Assembly: GCA_000708835.1 (NCBI GenBank)
Contig: DF237532.1
Location: 1 to 55,146, forward strand
Length of the DNA: 55,146 nucleotides
Direction of reading: 5' to 3'
From: Klebsormidium nitens
Lineage: Eukaryota > Plantae > Klebsormidiophyceae
The notes beneath the pieces are model-generated. The model had not been told where the DNA came from, did no database searches, and worked only from the letters and a program-made list of their open reading frames with translations. The stretch's first letter is position 1, and every line of letters starts with the position of its first letter. Positions 24,301 to 38,518 of the stretch are shown piece by piece. Position numbers and translations under genes: made by a program.

Positions 24301-25514
24301 GCACGCGCACACGAACCTGAAGCGCGAACAACTAGAGGTGGCGGCCCGGGGGGCGGGAGCTTGGCGCGCGCGCCATTGAATTAACAAGGTGATAGCGCGG
24401 CGCGCGCGCGGTTCGGAAACTTGAAAACAATGGCGGGGTATAGAGAAAGTTTTGGGATGCCGGCTTCGTACATGTGTTTGAACACGTCCACGCTACAGCT
24501 GCCCAGGCAGTCCCTGCGCAGGTTAGAAAATCGTGACGAATATCCAGCTTCAAGGCCCTTGCATCCCTAATCCGGTGTGCAAGTTGGAGCGCCCATGTCT
24601 AGGATATGTATGATGAGTGTATACAGGCAAACGTTTAGAGCGTCCCCTAAACGGACAAGCTAGTGTCCGAAAACGAGTCCGAGCTGAGGCGCGAGCCCGA
24701 TCATGGCCGGGCAGGTGCGCGAGGACTCGAGATTTGAGGGCTTTGATGCATGAGCGCGCTCCGACACACATTCCGAATGAAGTTCATGATCAGAGTTCGT
24801 CCTCTGGCAATGATGCCGGACGCGACGAGAGGATGCATGTGTCAGGTTGAGGTCGGGCCGGTGGCCCAGCATGGATGAAACGTTGGAGCAGCGTAGATAT
24901 GACCGGACAGCGGTCCGCAGCTAGGCCGCCCAGGTGCACTAATGTCTGGAATTGAAGACACGCAAAACTTTCATCTATGTATAGCTAGCTACATTTGGAC
25001 TCGTTATGCAGCACGATGATGCACAATTTTATAATACTTCGACATGCACATCGCACAGTGCTCACATGTATACTGGGAATGACCTGACATTCAGGTTTCT
25101 CCTCTGTCAAGGATCGGATCCTCAGTGAATCCGGTGCAAGCGGCGGCTTGAGCCTGGCGGTTGTGATGGTAATGCATATGCATGAATCAAACTACACGGT
25201 TCTCGAGCTGAAACATCAGCATGTACACCATTGGCACTCACTCTCGTAGCTAGACCTGGTACAATGTGTCCAGGTGTATAGAAATGTGGTCCAATATGCC
25301 ATCCAACATAAGCAACACTAGCCTAGTCAAAAGCGCTTTCAAAAACAACCTTTGACGGATGAGCAGCGTCTACCTCAACACATGAGCCGCGTTTTTCCTA
25401 AGGGCGGTATTTTACCAAGATGAAACCTTCGTTTCAATGGTCAACGCGTGTCTAGATCAGGCCTGCACATAATCGTCCGATGGTGTAGCGAATGGCTGCC
25501 AAAGCTCCTCACGG

Positions 25515-28500
25515 CTAAGGGCTCTTTTGCGGGTTCTTGATGACGATAGTTGCCGCCTGCAGAGTGAGAGACATCAATAAGCACCATCTAAGAAGCAATT
25601 CATGCGACGAACGTCGAAGCAAGTGATTCGACGAACAGATCCAGACCTCAGGATTCAGAATCTGCGAAGAGAGCCAGGTCAGCGCGAAATGCATCACATT
25701 TTGGAGAGGGCAAATAAAGGCCCCCAATCATTGCTTTGACGGTGTGGGCAGCGGATTACAGATATTCGGGCCCCTCAACTTCGCACACAAGATGTGGTTC
25801 TCAATGAGGTGTCCAAGATTTGGAACAAGCAGAGAGTAAGGTGCATCGTCGAACTCCGGGAAGTTCGCACCTAGACTGGCCCTTCATTATCTTGGGTGCG
25901 AGTTTTAATTCGGGGCCCGAGATATGGCAACGAGTTTTCTCCTGGCTGGTGGGCTGGTGACCAACATAAAGGGGCCTTCCCTAGGTAGTCTTGTCCGACC
26001 TACTTAGTGCTGAGCTCTTTCCTGCGGCTTCTGAAACAAGCTACTCGAGCTCATCAACTCGTTTTGTGTATGCAGAATAAACCTCTTCTCTTTAGACGTT
26101 GAAGGAGCGGAGGCTTTCGTACTCCGAAAGACACGACTGGTCCAAACCATCGGTGCAAGTGTTGATGCTTGAGCCCCGCCGCACGCTCGCACCCGAAGAG
26201 CACGCGTCAGAGACGGGACCAAACAGGGGAGTTGGACGGCCGTACCTCTTCCCCAAAGAAAAGCGTATCTCCGTCGCTCAACTTGTATTGGGTCCCGGGT
26301 CGCAGCCGAAAGCTGGCAAAAGCACAATCAGCGACTCGTCAGCAACTGCCCATAGAATGAAAGGATGCACTTCATGGTTACCCCTAAACGGTCTTATGGC
26401 TGCTAAGGATACCTGCAACGATCTCAAAGTTCATGCATTGCCCCGCAGAAGAAAAGAGACGATCACGTGCAATGATGACGGCTTTTGGGTTTTGCAGTTT
26501 CAAGAATTTTCGCTTTCGCTTTCAGAATTTTCATTTTCCGGTTTCAGGCTTTTAGGGTCCGAGGTTGAAACAAGACAGAGATCATGACTGTACTCAGGCT
26601 GGAGTTGCTATTGGTGGCAATTGGTGAAAGTGAAATGTCCTTTGGCAAACTTGCCATGCCCATGCTGCGCTCACAGGACTCGCTTCAAATTCGGAAAGTG
26701 GATGCTCGAAGCAAGGTGAAAAGCAGGATTGTCTTCCAGTCCTGAATGGATAGATTTTTCCGCTTCGAGCACCTCCGCAGGTAGCGTGACCAGTCCAGAC
26801 GGCCGACCCCCAGTCGCGAAGGCCGGATGACGGGAAAGTTTGCACTTTTTGAATAGGTCATCGAATCCGAAATAGCCTTGACTTGGCCAACGCCTCTCCA
26901 ATGCTCTGGTACGATTGAGTGTCCTCATCAAAATCAGTTGCGGCCCACATTGCACTGCCCCCAAGCGCTTAGATATCCTTATCACTGAGTTCGACAGAGC
27001 TTCCTGTGAGTGCGCTAACAAAAGGTCGGCTCTGTCGCAGGAGGTTCTGGTTGTTAACCATGGATGGTTAGGGGCTGATTATGGTTGGTCAGAGAATGGT
27101 CATATGTCCAGTGACAAGTCTTGGGCTTTAACCAGCGCCGGAAAAAGGTTAAAGCCCGGGTTATCTGTCCAATACCCTGAGACTCAGTCTGCTAATCAGC
27201 CTGGTTAGAAGCCAAATCTTGCTTTGTGTGACGAGAACCAGATCTTCACCAAACCGCCAGCCTTGGGAAAAGCCTCGATGCACAGCGCGCCACTTCCCGG
27301 ATACGACCAAAGCTTTGACGGACTCACTTGTTGTTGCGACGCACACCGTTGGTGCTCTTGAGATCTACCACGAAATACGCGCGCACATACTCGCCGTAAG
27401 ACATGACCTCCTTGGCAAAGATCTTGGCGTGCACCCCCGACACCTGCGCAACGAGATGTGGATTACGGGATTGTTCAGTATCACGTATCATTATGCGTGA
27501 TACGTTCACCAGTATCAGGATCGACGCAATCCCCAGTGGTTAACAGCCTTTCGCCCCTCAGTGGTTAACAGCCCTTCGCCCCTCAGAGTGTTACACTCGT
27601 TCGCAAGTCGTAATGGATCAGTGCGGCTTTCCGAATTGGAAGTTGTCATGGACCCATGGCATCTGATTTGATGTCTAGGTCCGCTGCAAATGGCGGAAGA
27701 GGGCCGCCCAATATCTAACCCGGCTGGGCTAGCTCCGTAACTATAAGCCATCTCGCACAGTTCAGAAAAGGGTGGCCAACGCTGGGCACCACTTTTACAA
27801 ATCACATGCTCTACTTCGACTATTCACTGCTGTATGACTGCTTCGCTCGTTCTTACACTGAGTCTGCCGAGGAAACATTATGTCTGGTCAGTGAGTAGCA
27901 CGAGCTCTCCGTGCCAACTCTCAGGTATGGACTCCTGTGATCGCAGTATCTGAAATGAGGCGCACGAGTCTGAGACCCTTTGACCTTTCGTGGCGCTCTG
28001 CTTTTTCTCGGCTGCCGCCCTAAGACTCGTGACGCGCCTTTTGTCATACGAAGATCAAAAGACAGAACCCCACTGTCAGACGGCCAAGAGTGGCAGTCCC
28101 TGCATCACATCAAACCACGAAACTTTCTTCACCGGCCAATTGATGCAAGAGGCGAGCCTCACCGTTGGATAATCCAGTTTGACCGGAACCATGTTCTCCG
28201 CATTGCCGACCTCAGCACCAATGATGAGCGGCGTCTTGCCGATGCTGATCGGGGGCTCCTTTCCATCGTTCCGGACGAGCGTCCACACGGGTCCGTACGG
28301 CGCCAGCCCCAGCGCGCGTTTGGTGGCCTCCCGCTCCTTGATCCACCTGGCAGGGAGTGACGTCAGCAGCTTGCGTCAGCAGATATTAAGGGGACTCTCC
28401 ATTCGGTTCCCGCTCCTTGATCCACCTGGCAGGGGAGTGACGTCTGCGGCTCCGTCAGCAGATATCAAGGGGACCCTCCGTTCGATTCCCGCTCCTTGAT

Positions 28501-31500
28501 CCACCTGACAGCGGGTAACGTCAGCAGCTTGTTTCAGCAGATATGAAGGGGAACCTCCATTCGGTTTCGGCTCCTGGACGCACTCGATAGGGAGTGACGT
28601 CAGCAGCCGGCATCAGAACGCTGTAAAGTAGACGCTTTGTTGGTTCAATAGGATTTCGTTAGTTGGATAATTGGTTAGGGCGCTTGATCACAAGCAAATA
28701 AGACGTGGGCGGAGTCGAAAGCGTGCTCGATGGCTTCCTCTCCAAAGCCAACCTGCAGTGACACAAGCTGACGTCAGACATTGGCAATGGCTGCTGACGA
28801 AATAAGACCATGATGACCCGATGGTATGAGCAATGCACAATAGAGCTAGTGAACCTGTTCCGGGGCGAGAGCGTACAGAAATGTTGACGACAGCGGTTCG
28901 AGGAAAATTGATTAACGGTTTTGGCTTGCTCAATCAAAGTCGGCCAGATAATTACTGACGTGTGAATCTTTCAAGGGGATATTGTTGGACAATGGTAACG
29001 TGGACAGGAGATTACCACTGCCTGAGAACCCACGACTCTCAAGAAGCTCTCTCATTTGAGCTTGGCGGTACGGCGCAGGAGGCGAAAGCTGACACGTGAC
29101 GGGTCATTGTAAAACAAAGCAAACCTTTGACGCAGCCAGGGCCCTTTAAGAACCCTGTTTAGTCCGCCCTGATCGCTGCCAAATCAACCGCAAAACCGTC
29201 TACATAACCGGTCAGTTTCAACCTTACGATCCTCCAAACCCCTAGCTTCCATCATACTGCAGGTTTGATCAAGATTGGCGCCTAACGTAAGGACTGGGCA
29301 GTTCAATCGATGGTAATCGGTATCCACAAGGTTTGTGATAGGTCTAAGTCGACCGTGAGTGAGGCAACCAAGCCTGACTGGATGTGCAATCACTTTTGTC
29401 CCTCTTTTAAAAACCACACCCTAAAACCCTAAAACCCTAGAAACTTTACAGGCATTCTCGTCGCTCTAGACATGGTCGGACACCCACCACTTCCTCATCT
29501 CGGCCCGCCCCGCGTCCATCGTCCTCTGCCGTTCGGCCCGCCTTCTCTCCGCCGCCTCTCGTTCTTTTCGCATCTCGATCTTGACCAGAATGTCCAGCGG
29601 CGTAGGCAGCTTCTGCGCCCCTGTGGTGTCCGCGGTGACCGTCTTCGATTCGGACGGCGCTGGACGCTTGTCAGAAGTGTCTAGCGGCGAGGGCAGCTTT
29701 TGCGCCCCTGCGGTGTCCGCGGTGACCGGTTTCGATTTGGACGGCGCCAGACCCTTGTCAGACTCCGCCCCCTTCAGCTCTTGCGCCCTTGTGGTGTCCG
29801 CGGTGACCGTCTTCGATTCGGACGGCGCCGGACCCTTGTCAGACTCCGTCCCCTGGGGCTCCTGCGTTTTTGTGGTGTCCGCGGTGACCGTCTTCGATTC
29901 GGACGGCGCCGGACGCTTGTCAGACTCCGTCCCCTGGGGCTCCTGCGCCTTTGTGGTGTTCTCAATGACCGTTTTCGATTCGGAGGGCGCCGGACTCTTG
30001 TCAGACTCCGTCCCCTGGGGCTCGGGCGCCGGTTTGGTGACCTCCTGCTCCTTGATCCACCTGGCAGAAGGCAGCTGACGTCAGCAGCTCGCGTCAGAAA
30101 ACATCAAGGAGACTCTACGTTTGGTCTATATCCTGGACCAGAGCGAGAGGGAGTGACGTCAGCAGCTGACGTCAGCAGGGTCAGAAGGTGGTAAAGAAGA
30201 CGCTCTGTGTAACAAATCGACTTCGGTTTTGAACCACACAGAGGGCGCATAATTTGCACGCAAGAAAGGCGTGGCCGGATTCGTAAGCGTGCTTCATGGC
30301 TTTTTCTCGTACCGCAATCTGCAGTGACAGAAGCTGAGATCAGACATTGGCCATAGATGCTCAAGAGTCTATAGATGCAGATTGGAGATATCATCTTACT
30401 CTGTGCAACAGAGCCATTGTACCTGAATTCACTGACAGTGGAAAGAGCACCGAAACGTCGACGGTGGCGCTTCAAGAAGGACGATAGACGCTTGTGGTTT
30501 GCTGGTGAAACAGCCGGCCAAATTTTGAGGTGTGCATCACGAAGCAGTCAAATGTTGAAAGGATACACGTGGACAGGGATTTCACAATTGAACTCAGCTG
30601 AAAGCCTCCGATTTTTATGAAGCGTCTCTCCCACTTAGAGCTTGAGTCGACAGAAGTGACGGGTTATTTGAAGCCAAAGCGAAACCTTTGGCACGGGCAA
30701 GGGCCACTGAGGAAGACTTTGATCCGCTCCGTGTGCGCTGGTCCTTTAACCCGATTCTGTCTTCGTCAGCAGGTCAGTCACAGGGCCTCCAAACTCCTGG
30801 TCTCCCCCGTACTCTAGGTTTGGTCAATCCTGGCCGCCTGACCCAAATCTAAACCCAGCAAATCACACGACTGGGCCGTTGATACTCGGGTCATCGAAAG
30901 CTAAGAGTCTGCACATCGGGCGAAGCCTTACATAGGCTAGAAGTCGGTCTTGAAGCAGGGAGCTAGGTTCACCGGTTGTGCCATACGTTCGTCCGTCTCC
31001 AGAACCAAACCTAAACGTTTTTCTCGTTTTTGACGTGATTGAAAACCCACCATTCCCTCATCTTTGCCCGCCCTGCGTCCATTTTCTTCTGCCGTTCGGC
31101 CTGCGCCGCCTCTTGTTCCTTTTGCACCTCGGCGCTGACCGGATCGTCCACCGGAGCAGCCGGCTCCTGCGCCTTTGTGGTGTCCGTGGTGATTGACTTC
31201 TCTTCGGACGGCGCTGGACGCTTTTCGGACTCCGCCGCCTGGAGTTCGAGCTTGCGCTTGGCGGCCTCTTGCTCCTCGGTCCACCTGGCACGGAATGACG
31301 CCAGCAGCTTGCGTCAGTAGGGGAACTTCCCGTTTGGTTCCCCGCTCTTGAACCAACTTGGGAGGAAGAATCTTCACTCTAGCAAAAGTAAGCTTTAGCA
31401 ATAGTAAGGTGCCCAGCCTGGGACGGATAGGGTTAGTTTGGGGGTTTTGGTGGGTTCGGGTGCGGAGCGGGCGATTCTGTGGGTTAATTCTGTAGTGCAG

Positions 31501-34500
31501 GGGCTTACTACTGCTAGAGCTTACTTTTGCAGATTGAAGAAACATCTTGGGAGGGAGCGAAGACAGCAGCTGACCGACGGCAGGTTCAGAAGGTGGTTAA
31601 GTAAACGCTATGTATGTGGCAAACAGGCTTCGGTTAACTGTCCGCGAAGGGCGCATGATTCGCAAGCAACAACGGCGTGGGCACACTCGTACGTGTGCTT
31701 AATGGCTTCCCCTTCTACTCCAATCTGCAGCGACAGAAGCTTTAGTCAGACGACAGGTACCAACTTACTTTGCGACGACTTAATGGTACGGCAATGCAAA
31801 ACAGAGCCAGCATAACTGACTCCCAAGACAGCGGGAGAGTACAGAAACGTTGATGACGGCTCTTCGAGAAGGGTTTGGATGACGCTCTCGGCTTACAGGA
31901 ACAAGCCGGCCGAATGCCTAACGTGTGAAGCTTTAAGAGGAGAATAGGAACGTGGACCGGGGTTACCAACGACTGTGAGCCCCCGATCCTCAAAAAGTGT
32001 CTCCCCAGATTGTAAGTGTGTACTACTGAAAGATCAAAACTTGACAGATGACGCGTTGGCAAACAAGTAATCGGAACCTTTGACCGCCACAAAGCAGACC
32101 GCCCTATTGCAACTCGTCTACATCACCACATCAGGTCGAGACTTCGAGGCCTCCAGAATTTTCGATTTCATCATGCATTCGCCTCTTGTCAGAAGGGAAC
32201 CCTACACATGTTCTAGTCAGACCCGAAAGATTGCAAACCCACCACGTCCTCATGGTTGCCCGCCCCGCGTCCATCCTCCTCTGCTGTTCGGCCTGCGCCT
32301 CGGGCGACATTTTCTGCGCCGCCTCTTGCTCCTTCTGCGCCTCGATGCTGACCGGGACGTCCGCGGGAGTACCCAACTCCTGCGCCCCTGTGGCATCCGT
32401 AGGAATCGTCTTCGTTTCGAGCGCGCGCTTGGTAGCCTCCAGCTGCTGGGTCCACCTGGCAGGGAGTGACGTCAGCAGCTTACGTCAGCAAATACTAAAG
32501 GGACTCTTCATTTGGTTCCCCTCCTAGACCCATTTGACAGGGAGTGACGTCAGCAGCCACTATCAGAATAACTAAACGCTCTGTGTGGGAATTAGCGATT
32601 TGGTCTGGTTGAAATCCTGCTAGGGCGCATGTTACACGAGCAAGAAAGTCATGTGAGGCAGTCGTAGGCGTCGACTCCTGCTCTGCAGCGGCGACAGAAG
32701 GTGACGTCAAACATTGGCCAGAGATAGTACCATCCTACTCTGCGCGTGACCCGATGGTTTGGGAGATGCATCTAAGCCATCGAACCTGATTCCAGATTGA
32801 CAAGGGCACAAAGAAACGTCGACGGTGGAACTTCGAGAAAGGACTGAAAGCGCGGTTAGCTTGCCGAAGCCGGCCAGTTGTCCAACTTGTGAATCTTTAC
32901 GGGGAAACTGCTGAAGAACGGGAAGGAGGACACGGCATTTCCAGTGATGAAGAGCTCACAATCCTCAATACGTGTTTACCCCAATTTCAGCTTGGCTTTA
33001 CGTCCCAGATGGGGGTCAAAGTTGGCACAGACGCGATCGATTGGCCAATGACAAAGCGGACAATTTGTCACGGGCAGGGTCCACTGAGAACCACACTTAG
33101 TACTTTGAGGCTTTCAGAGTTCTCGAGTCCTCGTATGTCCGCCTTCTGTCGGTCGTGAACCCTACACACATCCCAGTCAGTCTTGACGAGTTGCGCACTC
33201 ACCATTCCCTCATCTTTGCCCGCCCCGCATCCATTTTTTCCTGCCGTTCGGCCTGCGCCGCCTCTTGTTCCTTTTGCACCAGATCGTCCACCGGAGCGGC
33301 CAGCTCCGGCGCCGTTGTGGTGTCCGTGGTGGTTTCCTTCACTTCCGACGGCGCTGGACGCTCTTCGGACTCCGCCCCCTGGAGTTCGAGCTTGCGCTTG
33401 GAGGCCGCCTGCTCTTGGATCCACCTGGTAGGGAGTGACGTCAGAAGCTGGCGTCAGAGAGTGTTAAGGGGCTCTCCGTTTGGTCCCCGCTCTTGGATCC
33501 ATTTGAGAGGGAGTGACGTGAGCTGGTGTCAGCAGATGGTAAGCAGACGCTTGTTGTGGGAGAAGAAATGTTCGGTTGGATTCCTGTTTCGGCGCACAAT
33601 TTGCAAAGCAAGAAAGGAATGAACACTATCGTAGGCGTCGTTCCCTGATCTGCAGCTATAAAAGCTCTGCAGCTATAGAAGACGTCAACCATTGGCCACG
33701 GATGCTGACAGAAAGGCAGCATCTTACTGGCTTGTGACCCAATGATACGGGGGATGCACAACAGAGCCAATGAAACCTGATTCTAGGATGGCGAGAGCCC
33801 ACAGAAACGTCGATGATGTCACTTCGAGAAGGATGTGAGGGCGATCTGGTTCATTGGGACGAGTCGGCCAGATAATTTTGCGGTTTGAGTCTGGAAAGGA
33901 ATTCTGTTGGACGAAGTACATGTGGGGAGGCGAACTCGACTGACTGAGAGTCTTATGAATGTTTCGCAATCTTAGTTCGTTTACGGTCGAAGAGTCAAGA
34001 GTTGACAGACGGTGTACAGGTTAGCAAACCAGTCAGCGGAACCTTCTGAGAACCATGTTTGGTTTGCTCTGTGAGCGCTCTCCCCGTGACTGTGATCTAC
34101 GTCTACCTTACCAGGTGAGGTCCAAATTTCGCGGCCTTCAAACCCCTCGATTTCATCAAGTTGTTGTCCCTTTTCAGAAGCAAACCCTACGCATGTATTC
34201 GTGAGTGTTGACAATCTGCGAACTCACCATTCCCTCATCTTTGCCCGCCCCGCGTCCATTTCCTTCTGCCGTTCGACCTGCACCGCATCTTGTTCCTTTG
34301 GCACCTCGGTGCTGACCAGAGCGTCCACCGGAGCAGCCGGCTCCTGCGCCCCTGTGGTGTCCGTGGTGATCGTCTTCGATTCGGACGGCTTTTCGGGCAC
34401 CGTCCCCTCGACCGCACGTTTGGAGGCTTCCTGCTCCTGGGTCCACCTGACAGGGAGTGACGTGAGCAGCTTGCGTGAGAAAATAGTGGGGGGACTTTCC

Positions 34501-37500
34501 GTTTGGTTCCCGCTCCTGGACCCAATTCAGGGGGGGTGACGTCAGCAGCGGATGTCAGAAAGTGGTAAGTAGACGCCCTGTGTGGTCAAAACAATTCAGT
34601 TTGGTTGGATCCTTGCGAAGGGCGCAGCAACTACAAGCAAGAAAGAAGTCATAGGCGTGCTTAACGGCTTCCGGCGTATCCCGATTTGCAGCGCCAGAAG
34701 CTGACGTCAGACATTGGCCTTAGGTACTGACCACTGAGATAGATTCACTCTGCACATGACCCAGTCCTATGGAGAACATTTGCAGTAATAGAACCATCGA
34801 ATCGGATCTGAAAACGACATGAGCACACAAAACGTCGACAATGGCACTTCGATGGATGACGCTCTTGGCTTGGTCTGAAAGAAGTCGGCCAAATGCCTGA
34901 CGTGTGAGTTGTGGAAGAGACCTTGTCGAAGTGAAACGTGGACAAGGGTTACGGACTGACTGAGAGCCCGCAATCCACTTGACTTTCTTTGCCACTTCAG
35001 CTGAGCTGTACGGCGGGAGAATCAACGTTGAAAAAAGTGACAGACTACCAGGTTTTGCAAGCGGAGGTGTGCCACGGCCACGGTTTAGTGAGAGCCATGT
35101 TCGGTCCTCTCTGCACGAGCGCTGCCCCTTGGATTGTAATCTGTCTACATCAGCAGAGCAGGTTCAGCGTTACGAGGCCTGCTAAGTCCTCGACTCCACC
35201 ATTCTGCAGGTTGTTGGAGTGAAAACAAAGAGAGTCTTCTATTTCAGCGCAGCCCACTTCCTATCGGCATTCATTAGTGGTACTGGCGTGCCCCACCTTG
35301 TTCATAAAAAACATAGAAAGAAACGAAAGAAAAACTACTGAAAAGGGGAAATAAATCAAACTCAGTGATCCTGGCCGCCTGACCCAAACCTGGTCTCAGC
35401 CGATTGGGACTGGTCCGCTCAAGTGATGGTATTCAGGAATTCGAAGGTCCAAGTTATGGGCAAGGGCAAAACTTTTGCGAATGGCTCGAAGTCGGTCTGA
35501 AGTCAGGCGGCCAGGGTGAACCCGTTGTACAATACCTTTCTCTTTTACCAGAACCAAACTTACACGAGCTCTCGTCTGATTGTAAACCCACCAATTCCTC
35601 ATATTCGCCCGCCCCACGTCCATTTTCCGCTGCCTGTCCGCCTGCGCATCGACGCTGACCGAATCGTCCAACGGAGTAACCGGCTCCTGCGCCCCTGTGG
35701 TGTCCGTGGTGATCGTCTTCGCTTCGGACGGCGCCGGATGCTCTTCGGACGCCGTCGCCTGGAGTCAAAAGCGAAGTTAAATGTTCTCATCCCACAGGGC
35801 CGCATGACGGCGAGGAGGCAGGGTCAAAGCCAGAGCCGGATGACTATACGTGTACACTTTCCATGGATGGAGGACAGTCCAGGGCAGGACTGGAAGTGGC
35901 CATCAGAAACTTGCTCAAGCGTTTGAAACAGGACACGATTGTGAGCAGCGAGCTTGTGAGAATGCGCAAAGAGAAGTGCGAAGAGCGGGAGAGGGCGCTC
36001 AAGAGCACACAGGACAAGCTGCGGCTGGAACGAGACAAGAGGAGGGAAAAGTCGCTCGTTTTTTCCAATTACGATTTCTCGATATTCAGCCTTGGTGAGA
36101 CACTTGTGTTCTACTTGAAAGTCCAACTATCTGCATGCAGAGGTCTACACATGTGCCTGTTAGCTACAAGCGCATGTCAATGGACCACATTTAAAGGGAG
36201 TTTTGAACCCTGTGAATCTTCACATGGGAGTGGAGGCGGCTTTCTTTGTTGAAAGCGACCCTTGCCCTTTTACTATAAGTCCCCAATGATTCATATAGGG
36301 AGCAGAGTCCAGGGTCTTATCGCTGGCCAGTAAGTTCACGCGTTAAACTGCCCTCCGGCAGATTGATCTGAGTTCAGTGTCAAGGGCTTAAAGACTGATC
36401 CAGTTCAGCAATTGCCAGGTCATGGCCATACAATTGACATACCAAAAGTAGCATCGGATCATTCTTCTTGAAACAGAGCAGATCAATCTTCTCACCAGCT
36501 CTTCCTGCCGTCCGGACGGGACCGTTTTCGCTTCGGCAACCGTAGTGGCTTGCTTGGGGGTTGAACTGGGACTGCGCCGTACGGGAAGTGCTCTGCGAGT
36601 GCGTTTTACTTTTGGCAGGGGCGGACGAGAGGGGTCGAGCGCTCGGAGTCGGTGGTCGAGCCACCTGCAAGCAAGTAGAAGCTGTTTATCGCATGCACGT
36701 ACAAGAGACCCAAAACAGCAGAATGTTTCTAATGGTAAGACCTTGAAACCGGTTTAAACGGAAACACAACCGAGGGTGATACTGATGAATATCGCCGGTG
36801 CCGTGACGGCAGCGCAGCAAATAAATAAGTCGAGAATATCCAAAAGGGACGGCGAGGCTCTACAAACCCGGCTGCTGTGCGGTCAACTTTCTGTGGGTTT
36901 GAAAATTGTGAGACGACTTGCTGGATGCGGAAGGCCGCTCTATTTTGAACCGAGGAGAGATTGTAGGGGGCTTAAGTTACGTCAGAATTACTGTGTCATG
37001 GACTTGGGTGTGCCCAGAATCAGCCGCTCACCACGGTTGTCTAACAAGCAATTTACTGTAAGTCGTAAGCAGTATTCATCTGACTGTCTGCAGCTGTAGT
37101 CCAACTTGAAGCAGGCCGAGGTGCCCTTTTGATACGAATATCAGATTTGCTGTTTCTAGCGTTGATATAACCGACTTATATGCGTCTTGCAACGTGGGCC
37201 GCTGGCTCAGAATAGCTGGTACTCGGGAGTGGAAGTAACTAGGAAGAGGCATAATGTATCAGAATGCGGTGTCCCAGCAGAGTCATTTAAGAATGATGGG
37301 ACTCCTTGTGCTGGCTCCTGACCCTGCCAAGAATGTACCACATGCTCCAAGGGTCACAATGCTCAAAGGAAAGAGGAGCGGTTTACTGTGCAACTCTTCG
37401 GACCCGAGGAGAACCAAAAACATGAGCAACAGGCTGGGACGTCGAAACCACCGGACTCACCAGACTCTCATCACTGCCCTTCCCTCTTCCATCTCAATCC

Positions 37501-38518
37501 GACGTGCAAACTCTCCTGCTTCCGGGGCATCGCTTGAATCGGCGATCTCAGCTGCTTTCTCTGCTTTTTGCACATGCTGTATATACCACCTGCAAAGACA
37601 AATAAAATCCATGTCGTGAGAAGTACACTGTGGCAACACTGGCAGGGGGCCTTTGCATCTTGAAGGCGAAGGGATTAGGTGTCAGGGATGAACAGAGGCA
37701 GCTCAGGAGGACACTAGGCAAACATTCCTGCACCGGCCTCAAAGTTGGTTGCCCAATTTTGATTCAAGGACCGCTACATCTTCTTTGTGCCCTGTTCTTC
37801 GTATGCTGAGTCGCCACATAGCTTGGGACATGGCAAGGACTGTAACACTAGCTGACAAGTAGATTGGAGCGTCCTGCTATAACGGTTGCAGCAATCTAGC
37901 AGGATAGCGGTAAAATGTCCTCCGGTCCATGTTATGACCATAAGATGTGACCAACAGGTAAGCTTCATTGAATCAGCGCCAGTTTTGCTGCTTCTTTTTG
38001 AACACTTGCAACGTCGAATGCAGTGGTAGACTCAGGTTCCAGATACGGAGAGAAAGATACTTGGAGAAATAAGCCTAAAGAGAAAGGCAAGACATTCCTA
38101 TGACACATGACACTGATTGAATGTGAATGACTCCCACCGTTAATGGCATGAAACGAATGTGATCCTGTCAACCAGCGTATGGCATTTGCTCTATATGACG
38201 CCGAAAGCGGTATCTGACAAAGTCCCTTGGTGCATTTGGCAATGTGCCTTGCCATATGGCTTACCATGTCCTCATTGAGGCCCGCCCTTTCTGCATTCGT
38301 GCCTCCTGCAAAAGGCCTTCGAGACTGCTTTTCACAGACCCTTCTATTGAGGGTGAGGCAGCAGCCAATGCAGCTCGAGTGACCCCATGCTTCGCTGATC
38401 GGTTTGCGTAGCGCTGACTCAGAAGAAGCAGATTCGTAGGAGTCTCCAAACATGCTCTATTGAAGGAACCAGCGAGCAGGAAGGACTTCTGTTGGATGCA
38501 GAGCTGCGTGGACGCCAT
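25515..38518 (-). CDS. Putative plastid-targeted protein with 8 tandem MDxGRAxMRxWW helical repeats and a C-terminal FHA domain, 13 exons, 862 aa
   Basis: Exons 38518-38265, 37589-37461, 36664-36496, 35758-35592, 34446-34228, 33424-33203, 32455-32243, 31284-31051, 30060-29488, 28346-28163, 27443-27328, 26312-26246, 25556-25515 (last exon least certain). All GT-AG, phases compatible, no internal stops, total 2589 nt. FHA hallmarks: LIIG..., PT|VSGVHAKI, VDLKSTNGV, RLRPGTQYKLSDGDTLFFG. The N-terminus MASTQLC...VTRAA is S/A/R-rich and poor in acidic residues. Confidence 0.85.
28325..28620 (-). repeat. 79-bp tandem array (3 clear copies + 1 decayed) of the acceptor of exon 10 of the FHA gene
   Basis: CAG|GTGGATCAAGGAGCGGGA occurs at 28346 (real), 28425 and 28504. 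The two upstream copies read WIKEREPNGESP* and WIKERESNGGSP*. Confidence 0.9.
28560..35760 (-). repeat. Tandem array of ~1-1.6 kb intron+exon units forming the repeat region of the FHA gene
   Basis: Recurring intron blocks (GGGAGTGACGTCAGCAGC, GACGTCAGACATTGGC, AAACGTCGA) next to homologous exons, whose donors lie at 29488, 31051, 32243, 33203, 34228 and 35592. Confidence 0.9.
29613..30023 (-). repeat. Coding minisatellite, 5 x ~81 bp (27 aa, EPQGTESDKRPAPSESKTVTADTTKAQ) inside exon 9 of the FHA gene
   Basis: TCAGACTCCGTCCCCTGGGG recurs at 30001 and 29920 (81 nt apart) and further on. The reading frame stays open through all copies. Confidence 0.92.
35798..36093 (+). other. Antisense exon-like coiled-coil ORF inside intron 3 of the FHA gene
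   Basis: Open frame PHDGEEAG...EVAIRNLLKRLKQDTIVSSELVRMRKEKCEERERALKSTQDKLRLERDKRREK, bounded by CCCACAG| and |GTGAGA. Origin unknown. Confidence 0.35.

Follow-up and report, generated by a model that had tools for sequence, protein, structure and literature searches.

An expressed Klebsormidium nitens gene for a putative multivalent Trp-Trp helix scaffold with a C-terminal FHA domain

Introduction

Among the closest known counterparts of the protein reported here are the pyrenoid Rubisco linkers EPYC1, CsLinker and PYCO1, which are lineage-restricted, probably plastid-targeted, and built from short helical stickers repeated along disordered spacers. Linkers of the EPYC1 type are strongly basic. 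The FLIPPer criteria describe a linker as largely disordered, with repeated structured elements at spacings of 20-120 residues, and EPYC1 itself is not conserved beyond close relatives (PMC11570498). Binding by EPYC1 is controlled by phosphorylation, and a 2026 review reports no linker for streptophyte algae (PMC13655443). Here we describe a gene of comparable layout in the streptophyte alga Klebsormidium nitens, located between positions 38518 and 25515 on the minus strand of contig DF237532.1 (assembly GCA_000708835.1), whose 55,146 analysed nucleotides we call the window. Its product strings eight copies of a Trp-Trp motif on low-complexity spacers, behind a presequence-like N-terminus and ahead of an FHA domain.

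The likeness to EPYC1, CsLinker and PYCO1 thus lies in repeated helical stickers, disordered spacers, a restricted lineage and a probable plastid address. The differences are that the window family has no motif in common with these linkers, that it has a folded C-terminal domain, and that the window protein is acidic whereas EPYC1-type linkers are basic. Unlike EPYC1, the family is conserved across classes that by our own estimate diverged more than 500 million years ago (PMC11570498 for EPYC1). On balance we think it probable that the gene encodes an organelle-targeted, most likely plastid, multivalent docking scaffold.

Results and Discussion

Gene structure and transcription

Six-frame translation of the window gave eight matches to M..GR..MR.W, every one of them located between 38296 and 29487 on the minus strand; by a rough estimate, about 1e-4 matches in the whole window would be expected by chance. 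Each of the eight motif heads is directly followed by a TG/GT(G/A)(A/G)G donor, at which the first Trp codon is cut behind its second base, and eight in-register CAG/GTGG acceptors restore the missing G and supply the second Trp; a phase-2 intron therefore splits every motif within its first Trp codon. Splicing 13 exons, all GT..AG, from a start Met at 38518 to a stop codon ending at 25515 yields a protein of 862 residues, which reproduces exactly the gene model of a preliminary description made from the DNA letters; the eight motif strings given there were recovered identically. The Trp pairs lie at residues 85, 128, 240, 313, 387, 458, 536 and 727, and the resulting spacings of 43, 112, 73, 74, 71, 78 and 191 residues agree with the approximately 40-190 first proposed. 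The intervening linkers are rich in A, E, T, K, P, R, Q and S, in line with the low-complexity, multivalent helix-and-linker layout that had been suggested. The donor of exon 3 (GAGCTG/GTGAGA) was picked by its phase and by homology to the model of a second K. nitens locus, KFL_008960020, discussed below.

Part of the stretch is contained in 20 sequencing runs from seven studies and one organism, and splice joints were read from the contigs of four runs (four studies) over positions 25450-31350. The runs are recorded only as 'RNA?', and we take them to be spliced RNA because of their GT..AG joints and the contrast in contig depth, which is 50-600 in exons versus 0-16 in introns. Five joints are present in all four runs (25555/26245, 26312/27328, 27440/28160, 28342/29484 and 30056/31047), each of the form CT..AC, equivalent to GT..AG on the minus strand, and after cut shifts they coincide base for base with the exon borders. 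Splicing thus joins the last two repeat exons at the Trp/Trp position and onto the four FHA exons, and so the transcripts contain the very connection whose absence, according to the preliminary description, would have overturned the gene model. The gene is real and expressed.

Two features of the same contigs are recorded here in their own right. In all four runs, contigs of low depth (3-17, against 50-600 in exons) extend over most of introns 9-12 (25582-29444), which would fit unspliced precursor or trace DNA. A single contig of one run carries a 115-nucleotide AT..GC skip at 27077/27193, and its ends are unmatched.

The motif and its taxonomic range

Over 34 copies, the consensus reads M(31)-[DE](33)-x-[AG](32)-R(33)-A(27)-x-M(33)-R(33)-x-W(34)-W(34)-x-x-[QE](28)-x-x-x-K(22), in which M, R, M, R, W and W are invariant or nearly so. 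The spacers between copies vary from 20 to 191 residues and are unalignable; since the motif is conserved while the spacers vary in this way, we suggest that the copies are independent stickers rather than parts of one folded domain.

A profile built from an alignment of the window's repeat exons was scored against 1.84 billion representative proteins and gave eight matches, the true relatives among them being K. nitens KFL_008960020, Closterium, Chlorokybus atmophyticus and short Klebsormidium-like fragments. A Mixta inverse autotransporter, also among the eight, was set aside as a false positive caused by low complexity. Netrium digitus and further Closterium copies came from a second search. 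The family layout that emerges is a presequence-like N-terminus followed by 4-10 motifs, with a conserved connector that fuses the last of them to an FHA domain. So far the family appears confined to streptophyte algae, in the genera Klebsormidium, Chlorokybus, Closterium and Netrium. Three word-indexed searches returned no land-plant or chlorophyte member, a weak negative given that such searches require shared 5-mers and work within length windows; beyond the algal family they gave only generic, mostly bacterial-looking FHA proteins.

Spacing between motifs is a variable trait of the family. It is mostly 20-27 residues in Closterium, with 57-109 in the last two gaps; 27-42 in Netrium, with 89 before the last motif; 50-62 in Chlorokybus, with 91 before the last motif; and 43-191 in the window protein. 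The Closterium (CAI7860941.1 and relatives), Netrium digitus and Chlorokybus atmophyticus (Chrsp27S04245) proteins have the same presequence-like N-terminus and 5-10 motif copies, the last fused to an FHA domain that lacks the canonical Arg, and they show about 30% overall identity to KFL_008960020. Their spacers, however, are 20-60 residues long, Gln/Ala-rich and largely helical, in contrast to the disordered Thr/Pro/Glu-rich linkers of 70-190 residues in the window protein.

The preliminary description had called the motif unrecognised, and this still holds: we found it in neither the Pfam families, the solved structures nor the Atlas clusters, and a literature search with the motif strings returned no paper. 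Pfam searches with single repeat exons gave nothing but a sub-threshold mucin-like match from the Thr-rich linker, which was dismissed as compositional. In the ESM Atlas, the whole Chlorokybus protein met generic FHA clusters only, including a 390-residue Chlorophyta cluster that also ranks by shape, and the repeat region alone had no match. The family is uncharacterised, its members being annotated only as 'hypothetical', 'unnamed' or 'FHA domain-containing'. These proteins unite 4-10 copies of a Trp-Trp helix, 19 residues long and strictly conserved, with an FHA fold lacking the phosphate-clamping Arg, and the family is a new architectural variant among FHA proteins, with an undescribed, anciently conserved and putative docking motif.

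A second Klebsormidium locus

The nearest relative of the window gene is K. nitens KFL_008960020 (GAQ91978.1, 'hypothetical protein / FHA domain-containing protein') on scaffold DF237845, which is collinear with window exons 1-4 and 10-13, shares its Trp/Trp introns, and has about 76% nucleotide identity to it in most exon matches. Over exons 10-13, which encode the C-terminal FHA domain, amino-acid identity is 75-92% per exon. The second locus differs in having no counterparts of the five repeat exons 5-9 of the window gene, so that three motifs are annotated, or four with an unannotated first exon; its repeat region is basic (isoelectric point, pI, 10.3), whereas that of the window protein is acidic. 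The public model starts within motif 1 (MRAWW...), and the protein is N-terminally truncated: an unannotated upstream exon at DF237845 9700-10013 encodes an 84-residue N-terminus (MASSQLCIQQRSF...) that matches window exon 1.

Between the two genes the ratio of nonsynonymous to synonymous substitution rates (dN/dS) is 0.29 overall and lies at 0.04-0.25 both in the motif-2 exon and in the exons of the FHA domain, against 0.52 in the presequence exon and ~1.15 in the spacer of exon 3; from these values we conclude that the gene is under purifying selection. Constraint distributed in this way is what one would predict if free linkers connect stickers and a domain that are both conserved. The two loci have a dS of 0.66, and the flanking genes on DF237845 show no synteny with the window; the loci are thus either old paralogues or copies from diverged strains. 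A search of public proteins returned no Klebsormidium family member of 325-1034 residues; the full-length window product thus seems to be absent from public protein sets, and the annotation of the window locus needs repair.

Helices, spacers and N-terminus

AlphaFold models of homologues (KFL_008960020 and Netrium) draw helices through the motifs and give the spacers and N-termini predicted local distance difference test (pLDDT) values below 50, with no compact packing of the whole (predicted template-modelling score, pTM, 0.26-0.41). On its conserved face the helix bears a small Met/Met/Trp/Trp patch with two Arg and one Lys at its flanks, which is typical of a protein-docking helix.

Chloroplast transit peptides typically span 40-80 N-terminal residues that are rich in Ala and hydroxylated residues, have next to no acidic side chains, carry a net positive charge and lack structure. 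The N-terminus of the window protein has a single acidic residue in its first 50, a Ser+Thr+Ala content of 32% and a net charge of +3 before motif 1. In Closterium the corresponding values are 40-44% and +6 or +7, and the Closterium and Netrium N-termini resemble classical transit peptides. All full-length members have a presequence-like N-terminus, with Chlorokybus the least clear case, and the window's exon 1 N-terminus is conserved in the unannotated first exon of the KFL_008960020 locus. The transit-peptide-like character noted at the outset therefore extends to the Closterium, Netrium and KFL_008960020 copies, and we infer that the window protein is likely located in the plastid.

The FHA domain

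Against the Pfam FHA profile (PF00498, cutoff 20.7 bits) KFL_008960020 scores 43 bits, Chlorokybus 53 and Closterium 39, while window exon 11 alone scores 19.5 and falls below the cutoff. Profile membership of the window domain thus comes through its homologues, most directly through its 75-92% identity to the KFL_008960020 domain. In the AlphaFold model of the latter, residues 178-286 form an 11-strand sandwich (pLDDT 75-88), and a 52-residue helix (117-168) that bears the last motif runs into it. Foldseek matched this module to about 50 solved FHA domains at probability 1.0, with a target-normalised template-modelling score of up to 0.82, and the C-terminal FHA domain of the preliminary description is upheld by both profile and fold.

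In the FHA1 domain of Rad53, the Arg of the G-R loop clamps the phosphate, and the Ser and His of S-x-x-H and the Asn of (S/T)-x-N-G bind the phosphothreonine. In our alignment the Gly and the S-x-x-H and S-T-N-G loops are kept, and the Arg is absent in every aligned member, being replaced by Ala in the window protein and Chlorokybus, by Ser in KFL_008960020 and Netrium, and by Leu in Closterium. The canonical set of phosphothreonine-binding residues is therefore incomplete in this family. The fold is that of an FHA domain, and phosphothreonine binding is uncertain; with the Arg replaced throughout, it cannot be assumed.

Repeat exons and evolution of the array

Exons 5-9 begin and end in phase 2, and copies could therefore be gained or lost without breaking the frame. 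DNA repeat families (D1/D2), with periods of 0.9-1.5 kilobases, span the repeat exons and parts of the introns. Within exon 9 the 27-residue unit ...PQGTESDKxPAPSESKTVTADTTKxQE... is tandemly repeated (Table 1), and one spacer thereby reaches a length of 191 residues. A 79-base-pair array lies in intron 9, and each of its copies repeats a CAG/GTGG acceptor and the first codons of exon 10; the copies encode WIKERESNGG, WIKEREPNGE and the real WIKEREATKR, and the RNA contigs use only the last of them (28346).

The exon organisation is old. In Closterium each repeat is an exon of 60-72 nucleotides reading W...MRxW, with the intron at the same Trp/Trp position, and since this position is common to Klebsormidium and Closterium, the intron predates the split between Klebsormidiophyceae and Zygnematophyceae. 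The 558- and 589-residue isoforms of Netrium digitus are precisely one 31-residue repeat apart, which is the difference that skipping of a single repeat exon would produce. We suggest that the gene offers a clean case of valency evolving through symmetrical exon duplication, in which one repeat corresponds to one exon.

A decayed copy of the exon 6 start (CAA/ATGG, WIQERGPNGE) is present at 33501, 78 nucleotides upstream of the real acceptor.

Proposed role

We propose that a cleavable-looking presequence would direct the protein to an organelle, most likely the plastid, where eight polar helices would be strung on acidic, Thr/Pro/Glu-rich disordered spacers, the last motif lying in a long helix fused directly to the FHA-fold domain. 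Each Trp-Trp helix would act as an independent docking site for one and the same partner, the FHA module might serve as the single fixed or regulated anchor point of the chain, and valency would be tuned over evolution by the gain and loss of symmetrical phase-2 exons carrying one repeat each. If the partner is Rubisco or another plastid assembly, the protein would be a first molecular handle on the organisation of the streptophyte-algal pyrenoid or plastid; if it is not, the family would still contribute a docking motif that is new and multivalent and whose binding face can be tested.

Several points weigh against this proposal. The presequence, judged by composition, could be mitochondrial or uncleaved. 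With the canonical Arg missing, anchoring of the FHA module through phosphothreonine is doubtful. The Netrium model places five motifs on one 150-residue helix (pTM 0.26, with residues 1-89 disordered at pLDDT ~30), and the motifs of Netrium and Closterium may sit on such a continuous helix, which could point instead to a structural role as a rod or coiled coil; the motif spacings do not align the Trp pairs on one face, which suggests that there is no coiled-coil stripe. Finally, the junctions from exons 1/2 to exons 7/8 lie outside the 6-kilobase stretch covered by contigs and are not directly seen in reads. These junctions are nevertheless supported, because they have canonical splice sites and a phase identical to that of the contig-confirmed ones, because the annotation of KFL_008960020 uses the same exon 2/3, exon 3/4 and Trp/Trp junctions, and because the cleaner runs contain 0.20-0.23 of the sampled words of 28000-37700, close to the 0.22 share of exons 2-10 in that interval.

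Alternative explanations

The likeness to Rubisco linkers raises the question of whether the target of the Trp-Trp helices is Rubisco or a structure associated with it, bound in a multivalent manner; the protein would then condense Rubisco or act as a tether between the matrix and membranes or starch, with the FHA domain coupling this to phosphorylation. The layout combines multivalent helices with disordered spacers, and measured by the FLIPPer criteria six of the seven spacings are in range, the spacers are of low complexity, and the spacer of KFL_008960020 has pLDDT below 50. EPYC1, for its part, has neither a folded FHA domain nor an acidic pI. The N-terminus looks organellar, and the family was detected only in Chlorokybus, Klebsormidium, Closterium and Netrium, all of them pyrenoid-bearing. 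The 2026 review reports no linker for streptophyte algae and states that phosphorylation controls EPYC1 binding (PMC13655443); a phospho-reader domain would make sense in that setting.

Much of the sequence evidence nonetheless runs the other way. A regular-expression scan of the window protein and four homologues found neither the Rubisco-binding motif of EPYC1, SAGA1 and RBMP1/2, [D/N]W[R/K]xx[L/I/V/A], nor the diatom KWSP motif, and the remark that the repeats do not fit the EPYC1 consensus has thus held up. The linkers, first described as looking less basic than those of EPYC1, are indeed so: the repeat region of the window protein has a pI of ~5.3-5.4, and all long family members lie at 5.0-5.4, whereas the known linkers are basic. 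Closterium motifs, moreover, are packed every 20 residues without a spacer, the FHA domain has no phosphate-binding Arg, and absence from land plants is weakly established. We found no direct evidence linking the window protein to Rubisco or the pyrenoid; the papers examined reported no Klebsormidium Rubisco linker, and those returned for FHA and pyrenoid made no link between the two (in PMC8894945, FHA occurs only in the title of a reference). At2g21530, a plastid FHA protein, figures in the literature solely as a protein whose function is not known.

We therefore regard a pyrenoid function as unlikely. Its most far-reaching form has a slightly smaller chance still: the family would be a multivalent scaffold of the streptophyte pyrenoid, its Trp-Trp helices binding Rubisco or a small-subunit tail and its Arg-less FHA domain anchoring or regulating the matrix, and it would have been lost together with the pyrenoid toward land plants. 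If this were true, it would define a new, anciently conserved and acidic class of pyrenoid organisers unrelated to EPYC1, CsLinker, PYCO1 and RbcS-STAR.

A self-assembling network has about the same low probability as a pyrenoid function. Here the FHA domain of one molecule would bind a Trp-Trp helix, or a phosphorylated Thr cluster (ITTDTT), of another, and a branched homotypic meshwork or condensate would result. The whole family keeps one FHA domain together with 4-10 repeated elements, the last motif being always fused to the FHA domain via the conserved connector, and the element K-T-I/V-T-T/A-D-T-T recurs in most spacers of the window protein. This element is specific to Klebsormidium, however, and is absent from the Closterium, Netrium and Chlorokybus sequences, and the lack of the canonical Arg in the FHA domain also speaks against this idea.

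The preliminary description had also considered a multi-helix thylakoid binder, in which the Trp-Trp helices would lie on the thylakoid or envelope as amphipathic anchors. Interfacial anchors are typically Trp and Arg residues, and part of the thylakoid lipids is anionic. The eight window helices, though, are weakly amphipathic, with hydrophobic moments of 0.21-0.37 and negative mean hydrophobicity in all eight, and the surrounding sequence is strongly polar and acidic; the moments appear low for membrane-surface helices, which argues against membrane binding and weakens this alternative to the point where we hold it to be improbable.

Among solved structures, the best Foldseek matches of the FHA module are SNIP1, DDL, kanadaptin, MEK1 and Pml1, a result with which the sequence search agrees. 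Arabidopsis DDL (DAWDLE), human SNIP1 and yeast Pml1 are nuclear RNA-processing factors, and their FHA domain, too, is C-terminal and contains an insertion that separates the S-x-x-H loop from the S-T-N-G loop. They show no Trp-Trp motif repeats in the aligned portions and 22-28% identity, and only the FHA core aligns (E 4e-9 to 1e-3), at the level of many unrelated FHA proteins, which places the window protein outside their family. That the window protein is itself a nuclear or cytosolic adaptor of this type, its N-terminus not a transit peptide and the KVKRTRR cluster of exon 3 a nuclear localisation signal, would suit these nearest structures (DDL, SNIP1, kanadaptin and Pml1) and the shared position of the FHA domain after a long disordered or helical region, but is improbable, as the matches are generic (E ~1e-9 by sequence and ~1e-7 by Foldseek), the basic patch is not conserved beyond Klebsormidium and has a dN/dS of ~1, and the Closterium and Netrium N-termini are like classical transit peptides.

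Coordinates and minor observations

Table 1. Exons and tandem repeats of the Trp-Trp/FHA gene, in window coordinates
Feature	Position	Strand	Description
Exon 1	38265..38518	-	Start Met, presequence-like N-terminus of ~55-73 residues, motif 1 head (38296-38264); dN/dS 0.52
Exon 2	37461..37589	-	Motif 1 tail, short helix-rich spacer, motif 2 head; annotated counterpart in KFL_008960020; dN/dS 0.12
Exon 3	36496..36664	-	Motif 2 tail and basic Pro/Arg-rich spacer (KVKRTRR...); dN/dS ~1.15, by which the spacer appears poorly constrained
Exon 4	35592..35758	-	Thr-rich linker, motif 3 head; homology to KFL_008960020
Exon 5	34228..34446	-	Repeat exon: motif 3 tail, linker, motif 4 head; both ends phase 2
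Exon 6	33203..33424	-	Repeat exon, motif 5 head
Exon 7	32243..32455	-	Repeat exon, motif 6 head
Exon 8	31051..31284	-	Repeat exon, motif 7 head; donor joint 30056/31047 in contigs of four runs
Exon 9	29488..30060	-	Long repeat exon (191 residues), motif 8 head; both junctions in RNA contigs
Exon 10	28163..28346	-	Motif 8 tail, connector KRALGLAPYGPVW, first FHA strands; G-A replaces canonical G-R
Exon 11	27328..27443	-	FHA core (VSGVHAKI...DLKSTNG); Pfam FHA 19.5 bits alone
Exon 12	26246..26312	-	FHA strands (RLRPGTQYKLSDGDTLFFGEE); dN/dS 0.04
Exon 13	25515..25556	-	Last FHA strand and stop codon (coding part only)
81-base-pair (27-residue) coding tandem repeat	29609-30030 (exon 9)	-	5.1 copies, 85% identity
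79-base-pair tandem array	28329..28607 (intron 9)	-	3.5 copies, each repeating the CAG/GTGG acceptor and the first codons of exon 10

By visual comparison, a Logan fragment from a relative is about 88% identical to exon 7. Pfam searches with the neighbouring long open reading frames of the window gave no matches, as expected for intron-rich genes. An open reading frame of 129 residues lies on the plus strand within intron 3 (35863-36252) and is charged and coiled-coil-like (...LKRLKQDTIVSSELVRMRKEKCEERERALKSTQDKLRLERDKRREK...); it could be a chance frame, an antisense gene or a nested gene.

The word TGACGTCA occurs 16 times in the window, compared with 0.83 expected, and 12 of these occurrences are in introns of the Trp-Trp/FHA gene (28358-34709). 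Four copies, at 28358, 30076, 32467 and 33436, begin 12-16 nucleotides upstream of repeat-exon acceptors. The CTGAC within the surrounding GCTGACGTCA agrees with the CTRAY branch-point consensus, and for this reason a duplicated branch site may explain part of the excess.

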